DNA of 33,607 nucleotides from Vitrella brassicaformis CCMP3155 (Eukaryota > Protista > Chromerida): positions 1 to 33,607 of the forward strand of contig CDMY01000669.1 of the NCBI GenBank assembly GCA_001179505.1, written 5' to 3'. The position numbers and the translations under genes were made by a program. Under the pieces are notes generated by a model that searched no databases, had not been told where the DNA came from, and saw nothing but the letters and a program-made list of their open reading frames with translations. This document shows positions 5,792 to 32,842 of the stretch, in pieces; position 1 is the stretch's first letter; every line of letters begins with the position of its first letter.

Positions 5792-8700
5792 GTGATTGGT
5801 TGCGAGATCACCTGTACTGAGTCCGCGTGAGTGTGTGCGTCCGTGCGTGTGTAGACTGACAAGGATGTTGATCATCATTCCGATGGTGTTGATGGTTTTG
5901 TCGAGCGACATGACGTCGGACCGGAGCCAGGCTTTCCAGTTCAGCACCGACTCGAAGTACTTGCCCGTGTTGATATGCCTCCGGGCTCTCTCGTCCTCTT
6001 TGGCAAAGGCCTTTTTCCGCTCAACCATAAGCTCGTCACGCGGCGGAGTGCCCTCGCGTATGAGGGGAATGCCGAAGACCTGCATGGGCTTGGGCCGCTT
6101 CTTGAGCTCACTGAGTGGTTCCCGCCCCACGACGGCGATGGATGCGCTTTTCTTCATCTTCATCTTCTTGGCAAAGTCGAACTGCGGGAGGCCCTCTGGC
6201 GTCTGTCTGTCGAACTTGAGACTCAGCCTTTTCCCACCCCCCTCCGATTTGACGGGCTTGAAGCTCAGGAATGGTGTCGGCGCAGCTTCCTGCACCAGAC
6301 CATAACGCTCCAACAGCGGCACTGATGAATGGAATGGAACAGCATGCAGCAACCGATCCACTGTGTGTCTGTGCCACAGAGTATGGATGCCTCTCTCTCT
6401 CTCTGTCCTTGACGTACGCATCATTCTGTACGCTCCTTGAGCGATGAGGAAGTTGAGGAGGAAGATGAGGGTGAGGAAGAGTGGCACGCTCAGCCGCAGT
6501 ATGTAGTCGGTCAAGGGGTCGTCACCAAAGACACAACCAGGCCGCAGAAACTGCACGTCCAGCACTGAGCAGATCAACACATGAGCAGAGGTCCGGCCCC
6601 CATTTGGCAGAACGTGTGTGCGGCATGGGCCTGTGTGCTGTGCTGAGTGACCGAAGATGGTCGCCCAGTTGAACATCTCGCGGACGCGGCCCGGGAAGCC
6701 GATGTTAAAGGTGCCAACGATACTCAGACTTTGACCACAGACAGACATACAGACAGACAGACGAAGTTGGGCCGGCAGCTCAGTCCGCTTCCTTCCTCCC
6801 TACCTCTGCATGAAGTTGATGATCATGCCTGAGCGAGACACACACAGGTGACATGTGTGTGGTGTCTCCGCACGCGGACAGATCGACCGCCGAGGCCTCA
6901 GACATACCCATAGTGAGGGAGATGTTGAGTGTGACGGCCATGCGGCGAGTGATCGGGGAGTTCACCTGATGATCAGAGAGACAGACCCTCGCATCACGTC
7001 ATCCACTTGGCACATTCGTGCAGCTGCGAGTGTCTACGAAGAAGTGGAAAAAGAGCCCAAAGAAGAGGAGGAGGACGAGAACGAGCCAAAAGATGACCGT
7101 TGATGAGGTGCCGCTCCGAGCGCAGGGTTTGCACACACCGCCCGTCTTGTAGTACTCGTCACCGCACAGTCTGATGGATAGACACAGAGACGGACAGCGA
7201 GCAGCTTAGCTTAGATGTGTGTACATACATACATACATCCGTCCCTCCCAGCTGGCTGACTTACGAGCAGGAGACAGTTTTGCTGTCCCTTCCCTCGGCG
7301 CACATGGGGAAGTCGTCCTGAAGGGCTGGATCAAGGCTGCCCCCTGCGCGCACACACCGATGCGCCAGTGTCTGTGTGTCTCATGTGCGGGTCTCACCGA
7401 GGCATGCGCCCTCATCCCGGCAGCGGAAGACGGATGGCGCATCGAATGTGAGGTTGTAGTCGTCGCCGAGGACGAAGGCGAAGTAGTTGACCTCGAGGCG
7501 CGGCAAGGCGTGGCCTTCTTCCATGTCCACTCTGGCGCACACGAGACCCTCGTAGTCACCGCAAGCTGCACCCGTCCACCCACCATGTGTGTATGTCATG
7601 TCTTCGTCTCCATACATGTGTATGTCATGTCTTCGTCTCCATAAATGTTACTTACTGTCTTCCTTACTTCTGCATCTGTCGTGCTTGTAGTCCAGGTATG
7701 ATCCCGTGGGGCATGTGCAGGCTGACGCGCTGATCTCGCCCCTGCTGAATGTGGTCTTGGTCTCGTTGCATGGCTGGCAGCTCGTGGCCTTCACAACACG
7801 TACATACACACGCGCATGTGCAAAGACACACTCCTGCGGTCTGTCCGTTGTCCGTCGGGCGATGTCTTGTACGTACATTGCGGTATGGATTGAAGCTCCC
7901 CACTTCACATTGCTCGCACGTCTGCGCCCCTATTGTGTCCGAGTATGTGCCCGGCGTACACGTGAGGCAGGAAGACTGCCCCTTCAAGTCCTGATACGAA
8001 CCAGGACTGCAAGACAGACAGACAGACAGACAGGGACGGAGGGAGGGAGGGAAGGAGGGTCGGAGGCGGGGACGAAGGGAGGAAGCATCAGACGACTTGT
8101 TGCCGGGTTGTGTGTTCGATCGTCTTTATGGCTTCCTTGCCTGCATTGCGTACAGATCGCTGCGCCTTCATCCGAGTACGTCCCTGCCTGATATATGAAG
8201 AAGGAGCAACGTATAAATGAATAAAGAGGCAAGATTAAGGCAGACTTCGATGCGCTGACCTCACAGTTTTTGCAGCTGGTAGAGGCGGTCTCGTTTGCGT
8301 ATTGTCCCGGTTGGCACAGCTGGCAGAGCCTCTCGTCTTTGGCATTACTGAATGAACCCGGCAGACAGTCTTGACAGTTGCCCTGACCCGACAACACAAT
8401 CCTGGACGAATGGATCCATTCACTGTTCCAGTGTGCAAGAGCCTCACGGACGTTTGAGTCGATGTATTGCCCCTCTAGACATGGGTTTGGGCGGTCGGGG
8501 GGACGGAATCCCGACTTGTTGGCGGGGAAAAAAGTGGTGCCGTCGTTCCACTGGAAAAAGCTGTCGTTGTTCCACGCGAAGCCGTTGTGGGTCGACCAGC
8601 TTCCCAACACGACTTGCTGATCGGTCCGCTGCACACATTAGCAAGGAGACAGATAGGAATGAGCGGGTGAGAAATGAGAGAAAGACAGCCAGACAGACAT

Positions 8701-11204
8701 ACATACACACACACACACACTTGATCCGCCCTGACTGACTCTGATTTGTTTGATGTCGAAGAGGCCGTCGCGGTCGCCGCTACCATTCAGAAAGCTGACA
8801 TAGCCGGTCGTCCCTTGAAAGGGCTGCACACCACACCACACCACACCACTCAGCGCCATGCGATGGATGTCCAATCACTCTGTGCTTGACTGACCACGGA
8901 GACGCTGTAGTTATAAAGGAAGTTGGCCACCGTTTCGTTGGCTTCATAGAGATCCGTCTCATTCCCACCTTCCTCTTCCAGCCATTCGTGAAACATATAT
9001 GCGTATTGCCTGGCAAATGTACACAGCCACTCACCCACTCAACCACGAACATAAAGGACTGCCGCGTGCGGATTTCTGACTGACTGACTGACCAGAGCCC
9101 GTCGTAGAGGTAGCTGGCCGCCCAGTGACAACCGTCGCTCGTGGTGTCACAAAGGTCGTGATAGATTTCCTGGATCTGAAAATCAAATTTGGAGTGCGCA
9201 CTTCCACACGTGGACACAAAAAGGGAATTCTTCTCTTGGCTCAGCTTGTAGTGCTTTACCTCGTCAAGTGTTCGGTTGGCGAGGTCGTGTTTCTCAGAGC
9301 CAGATTGGAATCCAGCAACAGACAGGCCAATAGAGTTGTTCGCGGCCTGCGACACACCACACCACACCATACCATACCATACCACACCACACCACACACC
9401 ATGCATCCTCCACGCCGCTGCCCGGAGGGCTGAGACTCACTTCGAGGAGTTCATCCGCATTGCATTCGGTCAAGTTGCTCTGGTCTGCAATGCGGATCCA
9501 GTCACCCGGCCACCTGCACATACCAGCCAACCACTTTGAAGTATGTGTGAGCTTCGAGCCACTTACTGCCTCCTTCCTGACATACCACATGGTTGGCGAG
9601 ATGAAGTAAAAGCTGCTGTTGCGCCCATACATGCCTGCCCGGTGCATGGCGCTGAAACGATCCAGCCATGCAATGCATGTCACACTGAAGGTCTTGGTAT
9701 GGAGCAGGTACGGTACGCACCAAAAGATTTGCGATGAGTGGTCTTCGAAGGCCGAAATGACCACGACATGCACCCGCAGACCAGGCAGCTGACTTACGAT
9801 GTCGTCAGCGACCTCTTCCGTCGGGCCCTGCAGACATGCATTCACAAACGGACGGATGCACCCACGCGGTTGCTGGGTGCATCCAGGTGACATACCGCCA
9901 TGACGAAGGTCTCGATTTCTTCGTAGTTGGAGTTGATCCTTCCCATCTCTCTTTTGATTCCATCCGCGTACTCGATGCAGAGACCCACATTCTGACCGAT
10001 GCAATCAATTCTGATCGCTGCCGGCATCCTACTGACTGCAAGCTTCACCTGGACAATGTACGCCAAACGAACGAACTCAAGCTCCTTTAGCAGCTCTCCA
10101 ACCGCTTGAACCAGCTGAAAAGGAAAGGAATAAGCGATCCAAAAAGGTCGTCAGTAAGCAAGTTCTGCACCGAGCGTCATTCATCATTCATGTGAGCAGC
10201 TGATTGGCTGACCTGTTCGGCTGCGGTGGGCACGGTGCGTGTGAAGTATGGGTAGACGGTTCGGTCGCTCAGCACACCGGATGTGCAGAAGGCGGCCTTG
10301 GTCAGCAGGTTGTACACCTGGGCGATGGGAGCCTCTGTCAAGCACGCCGGACTGCGTGACAGAGAGTCACACGGTCAGGCGATGTCTCGTGCCGTGTCAG
10401 GTCTTGTCATCCCTCCTGTCTGCCCCACGCACGTGCAGCAGTCGCCGATGATGCCCACAATTGGAGGCCTGCATGAACGTACGTATATACATCAAAAGAC
10501 GCAGTCAATCCATTCGTGTGTGGGAGCTGACCCGGGGTTTGTAGGGTCTGATCCATTCTTGAGCGCCTCGGCAGTCACGAGCGCGCCGATCACTGACACC
10601 CACCAGCCAACCAATGAATAGCGAACAAACGATTTGACTTGTAGTGTACCGTCGTTGCATTCTGAGTCGACGATGAGCATGTCAAGGTCGTGGTTCGGCA
10701 GCACATCAGTTCGGTTGTTGATGTCCTCCAGAGCTACAAAACATATCCAAAACACGCACGTACGTATCCACACACGCGCGAGCAGCCACACAGAAAGGAA
10801 AAACCACTGTGCTTCATCATGCAGGCCTGCAATGGCGCATATACCGTGCAGAAGAAGGGGCTCCGATTTCCTTCAAACAAGCACACAGACAACGGATCGG
10901 AATGAGTGGCGTCTTTATCTGCCCTGGCTGCCTGGTTGAGCCGCGTTTTTCCCCACCCCATGATGTTGCCGATCTTGGGGCTCCTTGAGCACACCGAGAG
11001 CAACGTCAGGTTAGCCTTCTGTCCGGCCACAAGGCGATTGGAAAGAACAAGACAGAGGACCAACAGAAACGATGACCACACAGGGGCGACCACTGCCCGT
11101 GCGAATGAGGGTGAACGCTGAGGACGCCTTTCTCTGCAGGCGAGGCTTCCACCCCGGACGCTGAAACAATCTGCATGCGGCTCCTGTCGATAGAATTGCC
11201 TCAT
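2870..11204 (-). CDS. Large receptor-like membrane protein: signal peptide, Venus-flytrap (ANF-receptor / PBP1) ligand-binding domain, GCC2/GCC3-type Cys-rich repeats, multi-pass TM domain, SP-rich and acidic tail; many exons
   Basis: ANF-receptor hallmarks are ALEDINNRTDVLPNHDL, IVGIIGDCC, LSDRTVYPYFTRTVPTAAEQ, ASYLYDGLW and FQGTTGYVSFLNGSGDRDG. Cys repeats include CQDCLPGSFSNAKDERLCQLCQPGQY and CLTCTPGTYSDTIGAQTCEQCEVGSF. TM module includes LQCFEHPNG...EITCF, LPLGIFGLLVYVV, FRTRYRFLFFRY and FWPW. Stop at 2870-2872. The start Met is tentative. Confidence 0.88.
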
Positions 11205-15076: not shown

Positions 15077-15930
15077 TCATTTGGGAGGCAGCCAGACGAT
15101 GATCTCGCAGCAACTCGGGATGGGATAGGCCTCCAACCCTGACTTGCCCAACTCAGCCTTCAGACCAGACCAATTGGACCAGACGTACACACACACACGC
15201 ACACAGGTGTCGAGTGTGTCGAGCTGCTGCCCGTGTGTCTGTGTGCCGTGCCGTGCCTGGAGGTGGTTGAAGTGTCTGATGAGGACCTTGATGCAGCCGG
15301 CCTTCAGGCGCTCGGCGCCATAGACATGCGCCATCCTGTGGGTGTGTCACGATACGAACACATTGGTGCAGTGCAGTGCCCGCCACACCCTGGCACCTCA
15401 CCTGCCTGACCGGTAGAACTGCCCTGCCCACCTCATGTGTAGGATAACGTTGTCCACCTCCACGCGCTTCATGACGTACTTCTCAAACAAACGCGTCAAA
15501 CGATCCATCCCGTACTCGTGAGACCACTGCATACCCATGCCCATTCTCCCTCTGTGTGTGCGTGTGTTCGCCTCGCCCACTCTTAACCTGCCCAGCTGTA
15601 CCTTGAGCAGTGGCTCAACGGTGTCCTGGTCTACGATGCACCTGTCGCTGTAGAGGAAACACAAAAACGCCGCGAAAGCCATGGGCGTCACACCCTCGTC
15701 GGCCATCGGCTATCGGCGTGGCCGGCGGAGGAATGACCAGATCTTCTCCTCGCCGTTGGCGAAGACGTCGTGGTACGGATGTGGCTGGTCCCCCTCTTTC
15801 GCTTGAGGAAGTCCTTGCTCGGGCGCTTCTCGGTCTTGGTGTAGAGGAGGCGGAACCGCCGCACGTCGGCTGACGTGCCGGTGGATGTGCCGCGTGCTGG
15901 TATGGGGTCTGTGGGGCTGGCTGGGCGTTC
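15077..15930 (-). pseudogene. BTB/POZ domain gene, apparently disrupted by a frameshift and an in-frame stop upstream of the BTB C-terminal half
   Basis: Exons encode MADEGVTPMAFAAFLCFLYSDRCIVDQDTVEPLLK, WSHEYGMDRLTRLFEKYVMKRVEVDNVILHM and MAHVYGAERLKAGCIKVLIRHFNHLQ, which are typical of the BTB C-half and the following helices. Upstream GC3-rich coding-like sequence is broken by a frame change near 15790 and a TAG at 15710-15712. Confidence 0.6.
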
Positions 15931-16059
15931 ATGTTCAAGTAAATGAAGCGATGGCAACAGCCACCACAACGACAGGACGACACCACACCTACACCTACAT
16001 CTACATCTACACCAACACCACACACAGCACACACAGCACAACACAATGAGTGAGGGCTC

Positions 16060-16091
<32 letters not shown>

Positions 16092-16958
16092 ATACATATG
16101 TGAATGTGTCTGTACATATACGGATATGGATGCCGTGTGTGGCCTCGTGTGTGTACCTCAGATGATAGTGCCTTTGATGGTCTCAATCATGCTGTACAAG
16201 GAGGCCGGCAGCATCCACAAATCGCTGAGAAAACGGCCAACAATCGCCTTGAGGAGGGGATGGAGGAAGAGAAGACAGTGAAAAGTATGCGTGTATGTGT
16301 CGTAGGTCACCGTGTAGTGCATTGAGTGGGCTCTCTCGTGGTGCCGGAGGGAGCTGGGCGGGAGCTGCAGTTGTCGCGACAAACACGGGTAAGTGAAATC
16401 TGCCCACACGGAAAAGGGAAAAATGGGTGAGATGAGATGTCAGATATCGGTGGTTTGTGTGTGCCACCTGATAGGGCGTGTCGAGAGGTGTACCTGGTGT
16501 GGTTGTGACGGGCCGGCGGGCTTGGGTCGCTGTACAAGAGGGGGTGAAGTTATCGGCAGACGCAGGTGGGGTGCTGCAGGGTGAGGGAGAGGGAGGGAGG
16601 GGTCGATAGCTAGAGATGGATGAACGAGAGCATCATCCCGGTCGATGTGGCTGTCTCAGCGAGGGCTCATTCGTCGTGGTTGAGGCGGAATGGCCGTCGT
16701 TTTTTTTGGACGATCAGATCTCGAGATCTTGAACTCGTGCGGACAAGGTGCGAACCGCATGTTGTTCAGGACACTCTCATGGTCGTGCTGGTGTCGGATT
16801 GATCCCTCTTAGACTAGGGTTCATGGCGAGTTGAAGTCCCCAGGAATCTCGACGGGGACGTTGTTCGGGGCTGATCTTTTGTGCGTGTGCAGCGCTCGCC
16901 AGCCCGGTCGTGCTGCACCCACAACCATAGGGCCGCACGTGACCCCCAAAACCACCTT

Positions 16959-17152
16959 GTCCCCTCCCCGGTGGTCGTTGATTTTGCCGACGACGAGGTG
17001 CGCCCAATGTCGGCGACTTAGAACTACACACCTCGGTCAGATTTCGCCGTGGGGTTAGCCAACCCTAAACCCTAAGCCCTAAACCCTAAAATAAACCCCC
17101 AAATTTTAACCCTATCACCCTAAAAACCCTGGAGTTCAACACATCTTGACTG
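16959..17152. repeat. Dispersed ~195 bp element, copy 1: GC-rich paired segment plus degenerate telomere-like (AACCCTA)n tract
   Basis: Near-identical to 30376-30574 apart from a few substitutions and small indels. Contains AACCCTAAACCCTAAGCCCTAAACCCTA at 17061-17088 and further CCCTA / AACCCT units to about 17130. Confidence 0.9.
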
Positions 17153-18231
17153 GGAATTGGCATGTCACCGTACCAGGGCCAAAAAGATGTCTGTTTGGCG
17201 GCGCCGATACGTACACGCAGGCAGCCAGAGCACCACGTAGTCATGCAAGGAGAGATCCAAGCATCGGCCGCACACACATGGATGTTTGCTGTTGGATGGT
17301 TGCTATCGGTGTGGGTGAGGCCACATCAGCAGATCTCTCAGGCAGGTGTTCAGGACAGCAGAAGGGATGGAAGGTGGGCACTTAATTGTAAGAGAAAGAA
17401 GCAGAGCAGGACGGAAAAAGACGTGTGTTTGGCTGTCTACAGACATAGACATGCAAACAGCAGCGGGAGCACGATGCAATCACGTAAGGGAGAGGAGAGA
17501 TCAAAGCATCAGCACAGTTGTGTGGCCTGTTCACATGTAGTAGTCGCGCCCCTTCATACACCAGACCACTATGTTGCCGCTGGACTCCCTGTTCAATTCG
17601 CGGCACCGCGTGCAATGTGCGGCCACCGCTGCCCGGAGGTGTGCTTCTTTCGCATCTTCTGTCTGTGCCAGTGGCAGTGCAGGTGGCAGCCTCACTCTCG
17701 GGGACAGGTACGGAATCATGTATCGTGCGGACGCATACGGAGCGAACGCAGACACAAAGGACCTCCTGCATCACACATGTGGACACGTGTATGCGGACAT
17801 ATATATGTATGTCAGGGATACCTATATGGACGTGATGGTCGACTGGCTCGGGCGAGTGTGCGGTCAGTACACGCGGCTGTATATGTGGATGGCTGCACAG
17901 TGCTGTAAGTCAACAAGGAAGAACGTGTGAATGTGTGTGTGTTTTGTGTTCAGCCATATCCAACCTGAAGATCGGTGTGCCGTCAGGATAGCTGCCCACT
18001 CGGACTGGCTCGTCTACCAGCATCTCGCCGCCTCGTGACCGCAGCCCAAAGGATCCACCGCTCAGCGCCACGAGGGCTCACAGTCGATCCGATTCACAGT
18101 CACGAAAAGCCTTTCATGCGTCATACTGACCATATGGGCTGAGTGTGAGTTGACGCGCATGCGGCGAGCGATGCACATGGAGTGGCGGCCTCTGCGTTGG
18201 GTTTCTGCATGACAGCAGCCAATCAATCTCC

Positions 18232-18266
<35 letters not shown>

Positions 18267-18384
18267 TGCTGTAGGCGTGCGAAGGAAATCGTCGCAGGCG
18301 TCGTCCATGCGCTGCGCAAGGGAATTATCGTCTCTCTCTGTTGTAGCATAGGATAAAAGGGCATCTAGGCGTGTTTGTGGATGA

Positions 18385-18648
18385 GTGAGAAGGCTAGGAT
18401 ATGTATTTGTCGAGTACGCACCGACCTTGTGCATGTCGTGTATGCCGTATATCCGTTGGCAAGCATGTTCTCAGTGTCCTCTGTCCGATCACGATTTCTT
18501 GAAATTGTCGGCCCAAGAAAGTCAGCACATGCACCACATGTGGCCACACGGCTGCGACACCGTTTTAAGCACACGTCCACACTGCCGTCAGGCCATTTTT
18601 GACCAACAGAGTCTACTCGGCCATCCATTGGTAGCCGTAGGACTGTAG
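18385..18648 (+). pseudogene. Possible decayed RING-finger fragment
   Basis: CSQC...HMHHMWPHGCDTVLSTRPHCRQAIF resembles a RING C-terminus. A single CGT to TGT change would give CPHCRQAI. Several metal ligands are missing and no exon structure is evident. Confidence 0.22.
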
Positions 18649-19718
18649 TGATCAGCCGGCCCCACACCCCCAGAGGGGTGTGGCGGCCAGCTGCATATCT
18701 TCTGTACCTCATTCACGTCTCCACCACTTTCTTAGTTCGTCCGACGTGTGTCAGCGTTGTGTGTTCGTCCCGCTGTGTTCGTTCCGTTGTGTGTCTCTAT
18801 GCCCCTGCTGCTGTCCCTGCTGATTTCTCTTTTTGGTGCATGTCTGGCTGTAGGCCTCTGTTCTGTGCTGTGCTGCCTTGTCTTTTTCCGACCTCTATAC
18901 GCGCGTGACATGGCATCTCCCCAAGGGAGAGCACCCAGCCGGTGTGCAACCTGACTGTCTATGTGCTGCACGCTTGCTGTGCGTCAATTTTCATGCACAC
19001 ATTGACTTGTCTAAGCCTGCGCCACGCCAGCTTGACGCCATCCCATTTAAACCCTTTTTCCTACTCGAATTCTCTCCTAGCTCAAGTGTACTCAAGTGCC
19101 CTCCCTCACTGGGCCCCATGCATATGATGAGACCCCCGACCCTCGGTCATACAGACGCACGAGTGAGTGAACTACGCAGAGCTGACGCGCAGTATGGGTG
19201 TGAGTGGCCGCACGACTCACCGCAGATGGCCTGCAATGGGAAAAATCTCGCGACAGGGAGATCTGCAAGCTTAGCCAAAGGGAATGGGACTTTCCCCCCC
19301 ACCCCGTGCGTGGTTGTTAGACGGGCGTGTTTGTGTGTGACTGGGCGATCTGCACTGGCTGGCCACCTGGGGATGGGCGGTATCTACGTATGGAGTCATG
19401 GTGCAGCACGCACGCGCGCACGCCGCCTTCAAGCTGCTGCTGAGGTGGCGCGTGTGCAACGTTGTGTGCCTGCCCGTATGTTGCCGTCGTTCGCAGCGCA
19501 TTGCATATCCTCCTGTTTGCTGCATCTGCCCTCTGCGTGTTGCGTGTCTGTGTTGCGTGTCGGGTGCGTGTTTTCATGTTGGACAGACCGACAGGGGACT
19601 TGGCCGTCAGGCCGCCTAGGGTGCTCCCTGAAACCGCTGCTGCAGGGAATGGGACTTTCTGCAGATCTGCTGATGAGAGGTGCGTTCGCTCATCGTATCG
19701 CGGCAGAAGCATCTGCAG

Positions 19719-22700
19719 ATGATGAGCGTGTTTCCGCATCCGATAATGATTCTTCCGCCCGTCGTCCTTGTTGCCCTCTGCTCATCGCTCGTGGCGTCCT
19801 CGCCCCTTCGGCGTACGCTCCAGGCCGCCAATCAGACGGCTGCATCCCCTCCCCTCCCTCCGGGCAGGCGTGACCCCACGCGGCTGAAGCTCCTGCAACG
19901 CTCTCGCGTCTTCCGCCCTGCTGACGAGGTGGACGCGGAGACCGATGAAATGCTGTATGGCGACAACATTCTTCCCTACACCGAAATGGAGGAGCTGGAG
20001 CGGTGTGATTCGTGTCAGGAGGATGCGGCGGCTCTGTTCGACTGGTCCTACGAGGCCGGATTGGTGGACAACGAGACAGAGTCCATCTTTGAGGACAACC
20101 TATGCGTGGTGTCCTTCATCACATGTGTGCGGCTGAGTGAGGCGCTGGCCGACGGCGGACCGCGGAAGGGCTACATCATCGATTTGAGTGGGGATGCCGA
20201 TGATATGGAGATATCGGATGTGCCGCTGATCGTGCAGCAGCGAGGCTGGAAACCTTTCGTCTTTTCGGATGTGTTCTATCGGCTCCGTCACATTATTTGC
20301 TTCTCAGCCTATCAGCTGCCTATGCAGGGAAGCTTGGGCGACGAGATCGCGAAAGTGACATCTCTTCGCGCTATCTTCCTGTCTATAGTGGTGAGCTAGA
20401 TCTACTGATGCGCACATTAACTTACGCACATTCTTGTTGTAATGCTGTTTATCATGTCAGGACGGCATGAATGGGCCCCTCCCAACTACAATTGGCGAGC
20501 TGCCTTACCTGAAGGGCCTGTACATACTGCTTTCATCATTCAGCGGTCCCATCCCATCCTCCCTCACGAACCTCTCGCGCCTCGAAGCTCTTGTGCTTGC
20601 GAGGACAGACCTCTCAGGACCCATCCCTCAAGACATCGGCAGACTCCACCGGCTGCGGATCCTGGAGATCTGGAGCAACAAGCGGATGGAGGGGCCCTTC
20701 CCGGCCAGTGTGACATCTTGCCGCAACCTGAGGCGAATGGCCCTCGATGAGACCGGCTTGGTGGGCTCTCTGCCTGTCGATCTGGGTACCCTGTCCCGCT
20801 TGGATGATTTGCGGCTGGCGAACAATTCGCTGAGTGGGGAGCTGCCCCGGTCACTGGTGCAGCTGAGACGGTTGCGAGTACTCAATCTGTCCAACAACCG
20901 TTTCAGTGGCCCGTTGCCGGAGGGGCTGGAGAGCAAGATGAACAGCCTACAATATCTAGAAGGGGTACATACCGACACACACTCACACCGACACACACGG
21001 ACATCAACGACTGAGTCCATATATACGATCTCCCTCTCCATGGATGTCTGCGTAGTTGTCGGGTCCCTTGCCGATTGAGTTGGGTGGCTGGAAGTCCATG
21101 GAGGTCCTTGATCTGGAAAACAATAACTTCAGCGGCCCCATACCAGCAGAGCTGGGACAACTGTCTCAGCTACGACTTCTGAACCTCGGAAACAACACGG
21201 TAGATACCGACACACACTCATACCGACACGCGGACACCGTTGACTGAATCCATACATATGATCTCCCTCTCCATGGATGTCTGTCTGTGTAGTTGTCGGG
21301 TCCCATACCAGCAGAGCTGGGACAACTGTCTAAGCTACGACAACTGAACCTCGCAGACAACAGGGTAGATACCGACGCACACTCATACCGACGCACGGAC
21401 ATCAATGACTGAATCCATACATAGGATCTCCCTCTCCATGGATGTCTGTGTAGTTGTCGGGTCCCCTGCCGATTGAGTTGGGTGGCTGGAAGTCCATGGA
21501 GTTCCTTGATCTGTACAACACTAACTTCAGCACCCATACCAGCAGAGCTGGGACAGCTGTCTAAGCTACGGAAACTGGACCTCGCAAACAACAGGGTAGA
21601 TACCGACACACGCTCATCCCGACACAAGGACATACATCAATAACTGAATCCATACATATGATCTCCCTCTCCATGGATGTCTGTCTGTGTAGTTGTCGGG
21701 TCCCCTGCCGATTGAGTTGGGTGGCTGCAAGTCCATGGAGGTCCTTGATCTGTACAACAACAACTTCAGCGGCTCCCTAGAGCCGCTCAGCAACTTGACG
21801 TCGCTTATAGACCTGTTCGTGTCCAACAACTCGGTGAGCTAAAGGGGGGGAAGGCGATGGGGCCGGCAAATCTGTGTGTGTGTACGCGTATGTGCTGTGC
21901 TTCCGTGTCATGTCAGTTTGAGGGTTATCTGCCCCTCGGTTCCCACAGTTTCCCGAATCTCACCACCATCGAAGCAGCCAACAATCGGTGCGCACGCAAC
22001 ACCCACGCAAACACTTTTCATGTATGCTGCATCGGTCGTCAGGCTGACTGCCATGCTGGACCGCCCCTCCGGTGGCCCGGCGTACCCGAACGTTCGTTAT
22101 CTGGACCTCGCCTCCAATCGTCTTAACACGTCCATCGACCTGACGTTGTTCCCCAACCTCGTGGAGGCCAGTTTCAGGAACAATCGCATCCCGGGATTCA
22201 TCGGCAACGGATCCATGCCCAAATCGTAAGCGACATATAGAGAGACGAAGACATAGTGACGGGTGTTTGCCTGTCAGGTTGTGGTACTTGAGTTTGGCGG
22301 ACAACCTGCTGACTGCCCTGCCGGAGGGCTTCCGCTCCATGCCGAATCTACTGTCGCTGAATCTCGCCAACAATCGCATCAGCCAGTGGCCCACATGGGG
22401 GTCGACACCACCAGGATTATGCAAGTGGGATTCTCTCAGTAAGTTCTTGGAATACACAGGCGAGCAGGCGGTCGTGTTCTCTCTGTGACGATGCGGTAGG
22501 CTTGGATATTGTGAAGGATGATCCCCCGCCCGACTGGGGCAGCCTAACCGTCCTGGACGTCTCCAACAATCCCATCAACACAGACGTGACCGCATTCCTA
22601 ATGCCCCTCAAATGGCAGAGAAGGTAAGAAGATATACACACGCATTAATACACAGACATGACATGTGTGATCGCTGGAATGCATCTGTGTGATCTCCTCG

Positions 22701-28239: not shown

Positions 28240-30200
28240 ATGTAGGGCGTCCCTTCATCAAGCAGAGCCCTTCACGAGCGATGTGCCCTTTTGTGTGAAT
28301 GTGCGTGCGGAGGTTAGTGACTGTGCGTGTGCATGTATGTGTGAGCTTGACGACGAGTGTGCCTGAGTGTTGCCCTGCCTGCTGTGACTTGACTCGTTGC
28401 TCAAAAGCACGGAAGTCGATCAAGTAATACACAGGTACTTCAAGAGGCCAAACAAACGTCTGGGAGAAGTTGCTTCGCAGTGAGTGGCTGCACGTGACTG
28501 ACCCACCTGCACGCGCACAATACACACGCACCCATCCAAACACACACGTGTAGATGCATGTCACTTTGCTGACTTACCAAAGAGTTCGCGCAGGTCCCTT
28601 CGCGCATTGAGTTTGACGCACAGCTTGCGGGGGATCTTGATACATCTTAATCAGACGCATGCATCATGCTGTGCAAATTCTGCACACACACATACATACC
28701 CACGTATCAGGCGACTGATTGATGTATATGTCACCTGGTGAGTGAGACAGAGGCCGTCCAGCAGGCGCTGCCAACAGCCGGGCACCGAGTCCCTGTGTGT
28801 GAGTGAGCGCAGAAATTTGCGCATTTGCACGGGTAAGATTCATGCATCGGCGGATCGGTCTCTGTCCGTGTGTCGGATACCTGGGTACGACTTCCCAGAG
28901 TGACGACTGCACTCCCCCGCCCTCCTCGTCACCAACACCCGTGCTGAACCACAACCATCACCCCCCCACACACACAACAATGAGGGCTCACGCGTTGATG
29001 TCATTCATTCACCATGTGTCGGCATGCGTACCTGCTGGGCGTGTGCTTCTTTGGGGGGATGTTCGTGTCGGGCACCAGAGGGCTGCCCGCACAGGTGAAT
29101 AGGAGCATGCACGTACAGCCACGTATGCACACTTGCACATGTCCTGCGTCGCCTGGACGTACCGCGGACGGTCGACAGGGACGTTGGTGGATTGACACAC
29201 GCATCCATCCATACCCAACACAACACGTGTATGAGTGGGTGGGTGGGTCCATGCTTCAGTGTCTCACTCACCCATGATGCTGCTGATGCCGATGGTGGTT
29301 GCTCGGACAGCTGTTCGTGCGAACTCCGCAACCTAGACGCGCACACATCCATCCATCCATCCATGGAGACAGGCATCGGTCAATGAGTGTGTATGTGTGC
29401 GGGTACCTCTTTGTTGAGTCTGTCCAGCTCTCCTTGCAGTTGTCGTCAGTCGTGCTGGGGCAGACAATGCAGGAACGCTGCACACCACAAACACACACAC
29501 GACACAAGCATGCATACATCCATCCATACGTGCACCGACCGAGAGATCGTGTGGATGTGTGCGTGTGTGTGGTCTTTACGTGCGCCATTCTTCGGCACCA
29601 TGCATCCGTGTCGCGTTTGGAATGGGGCCGACAGAGCCGCCGCTCCTCCACTAGCAACAGAGAAACATACACGTGGGGGTGTCCGTGGGTGCGTACCTGA
29701 GGAAGTTGACGCTTTCGATAGGTACGTACCGCATTGATATATGTGAGTGGGCGTCCACATGACTTCCATCATAGCAAAACATGGTGGTCATAGCACTAAC
29801 AAAACACACGAATAACTCATCCATCCATCCATGCGCGTGCAGTGAGTGCGCCTGTGCTGTCTCTGGCGACCTGAGCATTCTGTAGCTGAGAGTCATTTTG
29901 TAGAGCGACGGGGGCAGAGACAGAGGTAATGTCATAATAAGGGGTATTCATTCATTCACACATGTCCGTGTGCTCATTGTGGGTGGGCGTGTGTGTTCAT
30001 ACGCATAATGGTCGATGAGGTCCGTCATGGTGGCCATGGATAGGGGCAACGCAAGGGCCACATCCATCCAAATCACCTGCAGGAGGCGATGATACGCACA
30101 AGTGAATTTCTGGGTGTCTGTGGCCCAGTGGGAGAGGGTGCGTGTGTACCTATGTATGTGTACCTTCTCCAACATGCGAGCCTCTCACGGGCACAGACGA
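28240..30200 (-). other. Probable spliced minus-strand gene or gene relic, product unknown
   Basis: A series of short segments bounded by CAG acceptors and GT donors is separated by microsatellite-rich introns. Some joins give protein-like text (CIKIPRKLCVKLNARRDLRELFGGSVTCSHSLRSNFSQTFVWPLEVPVYYLIDFRAF; EARMLEKVIWMDVALALPLSMATMTDLIDHY; RQLQGELDRLNKE). I could not build one stop-free frame. Confidence 0.3.
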
Positions 30201-30375
30201 GGAACATGGATTTGTGTCTTCGTGTGTGGACAGAGCTACGCACTGTATGGACGTACCAATCTTCGCTGTCTGACATTCCTACACACGTACCAAGAATCTA
30301 TGAGAGCTCCTCGTGTGGGCACGCACGTACACACCGGGTGTGAGGCAGCCGGCCAGGTGGTCCTTCGTCCTGCTC

Positions 30376-30574
30376 GTCCCCTCACCCCCGGTGGTCGTTG
30401 ATTTTGCCGACGACGAGGTGCGCCCATGTCGGCGGCTTAGAACTACCTCGGTCAGATTTCGCCGTGGGGTTAGCCAACCCTAAACCTTAAGCCCTAAACC
30501 CTAGAATAAACCGAGCCGCCAAATTTTAAACCCTATCACCCTAAAAACCCTGGAGTTCAACACATACTTGACTG
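30376..30574. repeat. Dispersed ~195 bp element, copy 2, followed by an inverted telomere-like tract at 30575-30589
   Basis: Aligns end to end with 16959-17152 in the same orientation and is followed by AGGGTTTAGGGTTTT. Confidence 0.9.
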
Positions 30575-30605
30575 AGGGTTTAGGGTTTTGGGGATATTGA
30601 GTGAC

Positions 30606-31379
30606 CAAAGTCTATTCGTGCATACGCACGTGTGCGCACAGAGACATTCATCATATGCAGACACTCCAAGTCCACATGTAGAATTTACTTTCAAGCTAGG
30701 ATCCTATCTCCGACGTCAACGCGCTCCGAGCGCGGATCTTGCCCCCTTGCCCAGACCCCTTCCCGCGGGCGTGATGTACGATGTGCGTTTGACGTACGAT
30801 GTGGAAGAGGCGATCTTTAACGTGCAAGCGTTAGGTCTTCCAGTCATTTCCCTCCTTTCTTTCGCCAACTCGCTCTCTCTTTCTCCCAGCCTAATCTGAT
30901 ACGTGTCTCTACCTGCTCTACACTGCTTGTTCCTTTCAGCGTTTTTGCCTCTGTCCTCAGCTTCTCTTTTCTCTGAGCACCTTCAGTGTGTGTTGTCCCT
31001 CGGTGGTCGAAAATGACGACGGCTCTCGCGCGCCTCCTCGTCATCTGCTTCTTCGGTACACACAAAAACACAGAAACCAAAGACCAGTCTATGCGACCCT
31101 GTCCTTCTTCATGCAGCCGCCGCGTGCAGTACAGGGGGTCGAAGCGCTTCGGCGAGACCAAACAGAGTGAGAAGGATGGCCCTGTTCTCATGCCCACTGC
31201 ACACTTGTATTCTGTATGCAGGCGTCAAGGTCTTCGCTTCAGGCGGCGTCAAGGTTTTCCCCTCATCAAACAGTACTGACAGTGGTGCCGATGCGGCAAC
31301 TTCCCGCCGACAACTTGAAGGTGCTAAAGCGACGATCAGATCACCTACCCACACGAACACCTCTGTGTGTGTGTGTGTG
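30606..31379 (+). repeat. Segmental duplication copy A (upstream region plus exons 1-2 of the germin-like gene)
   Basis: Matches 32059-32842 from CAAAGTCTATTCGTG up to the (GT)n tract, with scattered substitutions and small indels. Confidence 0.92.
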
Positions 31380-32058: not shown

Positions 32059-32842
32059 CAAAGTCTATTCGTGCATACGCACGTGTGCGCACAGAGACAT
32101 TCATCATATGCACACACTCCAAGTCCACATGTAGAATTTACTTTCAAGCTAGGATCCTATCTCCGACGTCAACGCGCTCCGAGCGCGGATCTTGCCCCCT
32201 TGCCCAGACCCCTTCCCGCGGGCGTGATGTACGATGTGCGTTTGACGTACGATGTGGAAGAGGCGATCTTTAACGTGCAAGCGTTAGGTCTTCCAGTGAT
32301 TTCCCTCCTTTCTTTCGCCAACTCGCTCTCTCTTTCTCCCAGCCTAATCTGATACGTCTCTCTACCTGCTCTACACGGCTTGTTCCTTTCAGCGTTTTTG
32401 CCTTTGTCCTCAGCTTCTCTTTTCTCTGAGCACCTTCAGTGTGTGTTGTCCCTCGGTGGTCGAGAAAATGACGACGGCTCTCGCGCGCCTCCTCGTCATC
32501 TGCTTCTTCGGTAGACACAAAAACACAGAAACCAAAGACCAGTCTATGCGACCCTGTCCTTCTTCATGCAGCCGCCGCGTGCAGTACAGGGTGGTCGAAG
32601 CGCTTCGGCGAGACCAAACAGAGTGAGAAGGATGGCCCTGTTCTCATGCCCACTGCACACTTGTATTCTGTATGCAGGCGTCAAGGTCTTCGCTTCAGGC
32701 GGCGTCAAGGTGCTCCCCTCACCAAACAGTACTGACAGTGGTACCGATGCGGCAACTTCCCGTCGACAACTTGAAGGTGCTAAAGCGACGATCAGATCAC
32801 CTGCCCACACGAACACCTCTGTGTGTGTGTGTGTGTGTGTGT
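32059..32842 (+). repeat. Segmental duplication copy B
   Basis: Near-identical to 30606-31379. Confidence 0.92.

Follow-up and report, generated by a model that had tools for sequence, protein, structure and literature searches.

A precise 5′ terminus next to CTNG in a low-copy element family of Vitrella brassicaformis, a candidate for Helitron-like mobilization

A 194-bp unit of the Vitrella brassicaformis CCMP3155 genome, found twice in a single scaffold, carries interleaved pairings compatible with a pseudoknot and, next to them, a run of telomere-like repeats. The locus raises the question of whether such a unit is a structured RNA, the relic of a chromosome end, part of a mobile element, or a duplicated piece of repeat-rich DNA. 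We took the whole 33.6-kb scaffold (C669) as the window and extended the searches to the genome, a total of 72,700,666 bp in 1064 scaffolds. The assembly was built from short reads, scaffolded, and contains N gaps (PMC4501334).

Results

Copies and boundaries of the unit

The features named in the original prediction were recovered by direct reading. GCCGACG (16986–16992) can pair with TGTCGGC (17008–17014), with a terminal G–T, and CGAGGTG (16994–17000) with CACCTCG (17029–17035) in interleaved order; a GGGTT-AGCC-AACCC hairpin lies at 17052–17065, and the run of about six AACCCTA-like units was reported by TRF as AACCCTA ×4.3 at 17061–17090, with degenerate units continuing to ~17132. The second copy in the window was likewise found, 30373–30574 aligning with 16956–17152 at 90% identity and with the differences listed before. 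The count of two copies holds for the window but not for the genome, where the whole unit occurs three times and its 5′ terminus at least 12 times. The original prediction had reserved the case of only two copies for a simple local duplication; a BLAST search with the 194 bp returned, in addition to the two copies on C669, a third whole copy on C904.

The boundaries first given for the unit, 16959–17152, had to be corrected. Both copies in the window start with TCCCC, at 16960 and 30377, directly 3′ of CTTG and CTCG, respectively, and 17152 is only a deletion breakpoint, ~80 nt being missing from copy 1 beyond this position relative to the other copies. The sequence common to copy 2 and the C904 copy runs on for ~25 nt, to 30601; for copy 1, similarity to the C904 copy extends over another 1.4 kb, here called region C (Table 1). 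Because the homology continues past the unit in both comparisons, 17152 is not the end of the element. No Pfam match was found in the ORFs of region C. We refer to the conserved 5′ part of the unit as module A and to the part with the telomere-like tract as module B. Module A of copy 1 ends at a CTCG (17032–17035), the point at which the C904 copy is interrupted by an insertion of a second family, W; module B is found in copy 2 and, with fewer repeats, at C904:6510–6586(−). From the alignments, the two copies in the window are best explained as 5′ fragments or short variants of a family.

Table 1. Features of the unit in the window and copies of the related family W
Feature	Position	Strand	Description and basis
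CTTG flanking (target) tetranucleotide, copy 1	16956–16959	+	Last bases of repeat U; U paralogues end ...CCTTGA
Module A, copy 1	16960–17035	+	Conserved 5′ terminus, starts TCCCCTC; covariance model R1 and alignments
Module B, copy 1	17036–17152	+	Short unique stretch, head-to-head GGGTTAG/CC/AACCC junction, then C-strand telomere-like tract
Region C	17154–18547	+	Continuation common to the C904 copy only; BLAST against C904:5075–6430(−), 86% identity
CTCG flanking (target) tetranucleotide, copy 2	30373–30376	+	Inside repeat V; V paralogues read ...GCTCG, then their own sequence
Module A, copy 2	30377–30450	+	Alignment and R1 search
Module B, copy 2, plus ~25 nt common to C904	30451–30601	+	Includes 14-nt G-strand telomere-type insertion at 30579–30592
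W copies	C904 6587–8859 (locus L031); C315, C515 (two in tandem), C567, C581, C430	− (C904)	Repeat search

The interleaved pairings

The original prediction regarded the pseudoknot-compatible fold as a special feature of the unit. RNA folding of the 107-nt and 194-nt stretches did not bear this out: z scores against dinucleotide shuffles ranged from −1.0 to +1.0 (−0.41, −1.04, and −0.73 for plus-strand folds, −0.10 for the minus strand), and the minimum-energy fold was built from other helices, GTCGTTG/CGACGAC and CGCC/GGCG. Using a script that counted H-type arrangements of two 7-bp stems with at most one G–U each, we found at least one arrangement in 62 of the 662 107-nt segments of the same contig (9%), and the observed count was reached by 3–5% of shuffles.

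Comparison of copies gave no covariation. In alignments of 6 close copies and of 10 copies including a second subfamily, no pair had a change on both sides, and the covariation check proposed for the two stems thus lent them no support. Stem A, the first of the interleaved pairings, is broken in its middle and without compensation in three of the six close copies (C725, C749, and C380), and the second subfamily has a nonpairing base at one stem-A position; over the copy alignments, stem A contains unpaired cells at two to three positions and stem B is 60–71% paired. Stem B is intact in the two window copies only. Its 3′ arm is absent from C904, C725, C749, and C380 and is missing wherever module A stands without module B, while its outer 4 bp (CGAG/CTCG) recur in some copies of the second subfamily. 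The alignments contain the uncompensated stem substitutions that the original prediction itself had named as evidence against a structured RNA, and by this criterion the structured-RNA reading fails. Rfam 15, searched both with the gathering threshold and with E values of up to 10, returned nothing relevant for the window and related loci, which leaves the telomerase-RNA-like idea with no match, and ARAGORN found no tRNA in the same set.

A dispersed terminus following CTNG

To follow the conserved part through the genome, we combined BLAST, pattern scans, and R1, a sequence-only covariance model of the core of module A. R1 gave 6 strong and ~8 weaker copies genome-wide. The 5′ module was located twice on C669 and on C904, C239, C407, C514, C227, C1010, C798, C971, C827, and C933; 5′-shortened copies or fragments occur on C725/C749, on C380, and at C725:8467, with a further fragment on C710. 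At least 12 copies, on 11 contigs, have an intact start, and all of these begin TCCCCTC(A)CC. The tetranucleotide directly 5′ of the start is CTNG in 12 of the 12 intact copies (CTCG in six, CTTG in three, CTGG in two, and CTAG in one), the flanks of five copies being known from 12 nt of the pattern scans, and the sequence farther upstream is unrelated between copies. The original prediction had proposed that aligned copies be used to define ends and insertion preference, and the alignment yields a precise 5′ end, TCCCCTC(A)CC directly after CTNG. One exact-match scan of metagenome contigs with a 21-nt core produced nine matches covering the queried 21 nt only, that is, chance matches in GC-rich contigs.

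Conservation of the terminus extends over ~70 nt, after which the content varies between subfamilies. C407 and C514 represent subfamily 2 and are 88% identical over at least 1.57 kb; their similarity to the window copies is confined to the initial ~100 nt and to a telomere-like motif, AAACCCTAAAAACCC, that lies ~100 nt in. The ORFs listed for the first 1.57 kb of subfamily 2 are all short and non-protein-like. Module A contains two small hairpins, H1 at 16974–16994 (GTCGTTG/CGACGAC) and H2 at 17001–17015 (CGCC/GGCG). The arms of both are kept and the loops differ between subfamilies, the one T-to-C change in an arm turning a G–T pair into G–C; the pattern is compatible with a recognition hairpin. 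In DNA folding, the hairpins of module A had no extra stability over shuffles.

The flanking repeats allowed the insertion sites to be compared with paralogues. Copy 1 adjoins repeat U (15937–16959), possibly the 5′ part of a family of BTB genes; U is also present on C416 and C729 and, as an inverted pair with outward ends, on C1000 (825–1912 and 3094–3974). Copy 2 adjoins repeat V (29962–30376), with copies on C751, C818, and C671. The V paralogues read ...GCTCG followed by V sequence, and in the window the element follows that CTCG. Because the paralogues keep GCTCG and go on with their own sequence, the CTCG of copy 2 is part of the target. At U, the paralogue on C729 and both of those on C1000 run to ...CCTTGA and then diverge, and in the window the element follows CTTG. 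By these comparisons, CTNG already existed in the target at V, and at U if a 12-nt deletion in U is allowed. In agreement with the original prediction, no target-site duplication was found at the junctions read, nor was there one between filled and empty sites of family W. Against a clean insertion, copy 2 interrupts V, yet the 3 kb of contig that follow do not contain the remainder of V. The three full copies also share their 3′ flank and could be duplications of one locus rather than independent insertions. For the family as a whole, the aligned copies show a precise 5′ end after a target-derived CTNG, a conserved terminus of ~70 nt, and differing downstream content.

A related family inserted in one copy

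On C904, modules A and B are 2.3 kb apart, and the intervening sequence is the insertion of W (Table 1), a family of ~2.0 kb with ~8–11 copies of 86–96% identity. We had considered the C904 copy as a long form whose internal deletion gave the short copies; this was rejected since the 2.3 kb belong to a separate family inserted there and not to a parent. W begins TCCC(A/G)ATGCC after CTNG, with two copies beginning TCTC or CTCC, and its 5′ flanks are CTNG in seven of the eight readable copies. The 3′ end reads ...CTTCGTGCTAG, with CTAG in seven of eight copies and CTCG in one. The filled site on C904 is ...CTAG–W–GTCAG and the same point in copies 1 and 2 reads CTCG–GTCAG uninterrupted, so that the window copies serve as empty sites for W and reveal no duplication, the W copy in question spanning a 300-N scaffold gap. 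A 4-bp duplication of CTAG was also rejected: the 5′ flank varies (CTAG, CTGG, CTTG, and CTCG) while the 3′ end is constantly CTAG, which is better read as part of the element. W starts TCCC after CTNG, ends CTAG, and has entered one copy of the unit without duplication; it is probably a non-autonomous rolling-circle-type element.

Module A could conceivably constitute a complete 78-bp mini-element ending in CTCG. Homology with subfamily 2 continues past the CTCG, which is simply the site used by W.

W has a strong 9-bp hairpin 33–64 nt from its 5′ end (DNA fold z −3.1), while its last 84 nt fold like shuffles (z +0.7, +0.8, and −0.6), the only pairing there being a 4-bp CTAG/CTAG. Both W and module A begin with TCCC and have a GCCGACGRCG motif in a subterminal hairpin, which is strong in W and weak in A. 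Homology of the unit and W beyond the termini was considered and dismissed, only the telomere-like stretch aligning. W contains a frameshifted fragment of a PHD-finger gene and has one telomere-like motif near its 5′ end and another near its 3′ end. At C904 8861–8876, the 16 nt before W at the end of module A are identical at 13 of 16 positions to the last 16 nt of W (6587–6602, minus strand); the likeness could be due to chance, a tandem-W remnant, or a shared termination-like signal.

The original prediction suggested a search for longer copies with RepHel or reverse transcriptase (RT) ORFs. Helitron Rep domains (PF14214) are present in the genome, with 14 matches and a best E of 1.4e-51, but the two Rep-bearing loci compared are unrelated to the unit and to W, and no RT was found in the ORFs of W and region C. 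A link to these autonomous Helitrons, on C366 and C200, was rejected, as they have no termini in common with W or the unit and share only microsatellites; an autonomous partner with the same termini was thus not found among the two. The Y1 transposase (PF01797) gave no match in the genome, while controls responded.

Telomere-like repeats and the repeat neighborhood

The telomere-like motif is far more frequent in module B than expected, with 7 matches in the pattern count against 0.05. C-strand motifs lie 100–170 nt from the 5′ end, in the same orientation, in three related subfamilies: the A–B unit, subfamily 2, and W. Because the repeats recur in position and orientation in all three, they belong to the element and are not marks of chromosome ends. 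The true telomeres of the genome are (CCCTAAA)n arrays at scaffold ends, and modules A and B were absent from all 13 of the telomere-bearing contig ends read. We rejected on these grounds the idea of a fossil chromosome end or common subtelomere junction. Family copies are found inside large contigs beside ordinary genes (on C227 at ~299 kb and on C239), and with no RT in the ORFs of W and region C, the end of a telomere-tropic retroelement, one of the original suggestions, finds no support. In the sequences compared, the telomere-like tract looks like an inherited, expandable internal component of these elements.

Other telomere-type sequences were seen in the data. Copy 2 includes a 14-nt insertion (30579–30592) of two G-strand telomere-type units, absent from C904 and head-to-head with the C-strand tract, that looks like a telomerase-type repair scar. 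Interstitial telomeric sequences from break repair resemble the unit in having short, degenerate, and partly head-to-head repeats away from chromosome ends; unlike them, the main tract of the unit is inherited within a repeated element and recurs in three subfamilies. On C894 (locus L028, 90–170), a telomere-proximal palindrome consists of a 25-nt arm, two to three telomere units, and the reverse complement of the arm, and lies directly inside the terminal CCCTAAA array. A satellite with a unit of ~60–70 bp has hundreds of matches genome-wide, including one unit at 30608–30680 and one at 32061–32132 in the window, others on C725 (~15.8–19.2 kb), and copies on C1017, where perfect telomere arrays of ~120–170 bp are found inside it.

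The scaffold contains several further repeats. Segments 30606–31379 and 32059–32835 form a direct duplication of 98% identity, 1.45 kb apart and flanking a 300-N gap; either this is a true tandem repeat, or the short-read assembly created it during scaffolding or gap filling. A repeat of ~350 bp at 19295–19644 has at least 25 copies with 87–92% identity genome-wide; 18580–19083 and 19649–20500 are also multicopy, and the middle of the scaffold is a repeat patchwork beside an array of LRR cassettes (Pfam LRR, 20467–21078). Elsewhere, C904 ~9670–10000 is a high-copy repeat with at least 35 copies of 93–98% identity, often at scaffold ends.

Position relative to genes

Several copies face an opposite-strand gene start with their 5′ end, at very short range. 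On C239 (locus L076, 1249–1455, minus), the distance from the 5′ end of the element to the start of an RRM-domain exon is 31 nt (Pfam E 5e-8), and on C227 (locus L079, 889–1410, minus), that to the start of a signal-peptide carboxylesterase is 76 nt (Pfam E 6e-23); the transcripts of both genes may start inside the element. Candidate ORFs on the opposite strand start 8 nt (C725/C749) and 19 nt (C380) from the element. Copy 1 lies upstream of a minus-strand BTB-domain gene (exon at 15398–15706), beyond repeat U. Two Pfam-validated gene starts among nine loci correspond to P ~ 0.006, a post hoc value computed with one gene start per 3.2 kb. An ORF-proximity statistic was not significant (P = 0.065): among random sites, 36% lie no more than 115 nt from an ORF of 60 codons or longer. 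The earlier remark that copies sit just upstream of minus-strand units has some support from the nearby RRM, carboxylesterase, and BTB genes, and the promoter-proximal position is retained as a secondary reading.

The scaffolds C725 and C749 are near-identical and either paralogous or haplotypic. Each has a 5′-shortened module A (C725, locus L032, 3609–3668; C749, locus L038, 3919–3978) in a divergent intergenic region of ~330 bp, with a small signal-peptide-like ORF on one side and, on the other, a gene resembling a pyridine-nucleotide disulfide oxidoreductase of the thioredoxin/glutathione reductase type. A Pfam scan of the first 135 codons of the latter found nothing.

Discussion

The 194-bp unit is probably, in our modestly confident judgment, the 5′-terminal part of a low-copy family of non-autonomous elements moved in trans by an HUH rolling-circle (Helitron-like) enzyme, an assignment for which the A–B family was read from the 5′ end and the 3′ CTAG end was taken from W. 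The reading follows from the precise end, the host-side tetranucleotide, the lack of inverted repeats and duplication, the TC start, the CTAG end (in W), and the heterogeneous cargo. Of the suggestions made in the original prediction, the best fit is a non-autonomous mobile element, not described before, that has a Helitron-type terminus. This suggestion is partly supported: copies are dispersed and begin at a precise 5′ end next to a fixed flanking tetranucleotide, and the related W inserted without duplication. Mechanistically, both families could be mobilized in trans by an HUH-type RepHel enzyme. It would cut single-stranded DNA, 3′ of CTNG at the left border and, in W, at the element-encoded CTAG on the right. 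Its recognition sequence would be the conserved 5′ module with the small hairpins, and the telomere-like tract would represent a microsatellite inside the element, able to expand, rather than a relic of a chromosome end.

Helitrons, reportedly described as rolling-circle transposons by Kapitonov and Jurka in 2001, resemble the two families in several respects. The 5′ end begins with TC (TCCCC in all 12 intact copies and mostly TCCC in W), the 3′ CTAG of W, found in seven of eight copies, conforms to CTRR, and both terminal inverted repeats and a target-site duplication are lacking; conserved termini enclose a heterogeneous interior, including the PHD-finger fragment in W, and RepHel genes exist in the genome. 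The differences concern the target and the 3′ end. Helitrons insert between host A and T, whereas here CTNG is followed by G, A, C, or T, and the GC-rich hairpin that Helitrons have 10–20 nt upstream of the 3′ end has no convincing counterpart in W, whose strong hairpin is at the 5′ end. IS91 inserts 3′ of CTTG/GTTC, and IS608 (IS200/IS605) inserts 3′ of TTAC and has subterminal hairpins. As in these groups, one end abuts a fixed target tetranucleotide (CTNG in 12 of 12 copies of the A family and 7 of 8 of W) with no duplication or inverted repeats, a subterminal hairpin is near that end, and the right end of W has the same class of tetranucleotide (CTAG). IS91 and IS200/IS605 are bacterial, however, while the present elements are in a eukaryotic nuclear genome with no detectable Y1 transposase (PF01797). 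By analogy, the resemblance to IS91 and IS608 would be one of working and not of membership, the target rule seeming closer to theirs than to that of textbook Helitrons.

Several other explanations were weighed against the Helitron-like one. A minus-strand retroelement with a LINE- or SINE-like "stringent" 3′ tail would have its constant end, ...GGTGAGGGGA followed by CNAG, as the 3′ end for target-primed reverse transcription at a specific nick, the variable extent on the other side resulting from 5′ truncation. One constant end, the many copies that match the terminal 50–70 nt only, and the short fragments on C725/C749 and C380, resembling extreme truncations, suit this model. Against it, there is no poly(A) or simple-repeat tail, no target-site duplication, and no RT in the Pfam-scanned ORFs of W and region C, the listed ORFs of subfamily 2 being short and non-protein-like. 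As W, moreover, has two fixed ends, mostly full-length copies, and a duplication-free insertion, we consider a retroelement unlikely. The SINE-like RNA of the original prediction fares no better. A SINE would begin with a head derived from tRNA, 7SL, or 5S that carries a pol III promoter, end in an A-rich or LINE-type tail, and be flanked by target-site duplications; ARAGORN and Rfam matches, an A-rich tail, and duplications at the junctions read are all missing from the unit. Gladyshev and Arkhipova are said to have reported in 2007 endonuclease-deficient Penelope-like elements attached to telomeres (Athena/Coprina), and the short C-strand telomere repeats attached to a conserved noncoding module recall them. 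Those elements are at chromosome ends and have RT and hammerhead motifs, whereas here the copies are internal, the 13 telomere junctions lack the module, the repeats are internal to longer elements, and neither RT (in W and region C ORFs) nor an Rfam ribozyme match was found.

The unit could instead be mainly a promoter or 5′-leader cassette whose terminus and telobox-like repeats drive or begin the transcripts of the head-to-head gene and which spreads with or without mobility of its own. The short distances between the 5′ end and opposite-strand start codons (31 nt on C239, 76 nt on C227, 8 nt on C725/C749, and 19 nt on C380), the BTB gene beyond U at copy 1, and the two validated gene starts in nine loci, with the post hoc P ~ 0.006, are in its favor; the ORF statistic at P = 0.065 and the existence of U and V paralogues with no cassette are not, and we regard it as improbable. 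It would also be compatible with mobility, since transposons often land in promoters, and the position at gene starts fits either an insertion preference for such sites or a promoter-donating terminus. If the unit were immobile and had arisen simply by segmental duplication or as a recombination mosaic, with a scar of interstitial telomere repeats, in scaffolds that are rich in repeats and poorly assembled, such an origin would account for the downstream flank common to all three full copies, the patchwork of U, V, the 350-bp high-copy repeat, and the satellite, the telomerase-type scars such as 30579–30592, and the N gaps of a short-read assembly. It is nevertheless highly unlikely, because duplication breakpoints would not give identical starts after CTNG, and 12 copies on 11 contigs start at exactly the same base with unrelated sequence upstream, one of them ~299 kb inside a large contig. 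Finally, a structured noncoding RNA combining an H-type pseudoknot with a telomere-template-like tract, telomerase-RNA-like or self-cleaving, could point to the two interleaved 7-bp pairings present in both window copies and to the outer 4 bp of stem B in some subfamily-2 copies. The z scores of −1.0 to +1.0 with other helices in the minimum-energy fold, the 9% of segments that allow such an arrangement, the missing two-sided changes, stem A broken in C725, C749, and C380, the stem-B 3′ arm lost there and in C904, and Rfam empty at E up to 10 make this extremely improbable; compared with H-type pseudoknots and telomerase RNAs, the unit has no covarying interleaved helices, no extra fold stability, and no match to a curated RNA.

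Returning to the Helitron-like explanation, the Vitrella genome paper reports only ~1.5 Mb of transposable elements, of which ~18 kb is Helitron, with most repeats unclassified (PMC4501334). A family with the present termini appears to be undescribed, none such being included in that paper. The well-supported part of the result is a modest transposon finding with an unusual CTNG flank rule. A more specific proposal is rather unlikely as a whole: a chromerid HUH/rolling-circle lineage that would integrate 3′ of CTNG, have a right end with the same tetranucleotide, lie head-to-head 10–100 nt from start codons, and combine telobox-like repeats with a portable, outward-directed promoter.

The analysis removes a tempting pseudoknot or telomerase-RNA-like candidate as unsupported. 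Should the CTNG rule and insertion without duplication be borne out, eukaryotic rolling-circle-type elements would gain a sequence-specific target rule, which would provide a simple in vitro test for the RepHel enzymes of Vitrella. The copies at gene starts, together with their telobox-like repeats, would make promoter donation by a transposon testable in a close relative of apicomplexan parasites.
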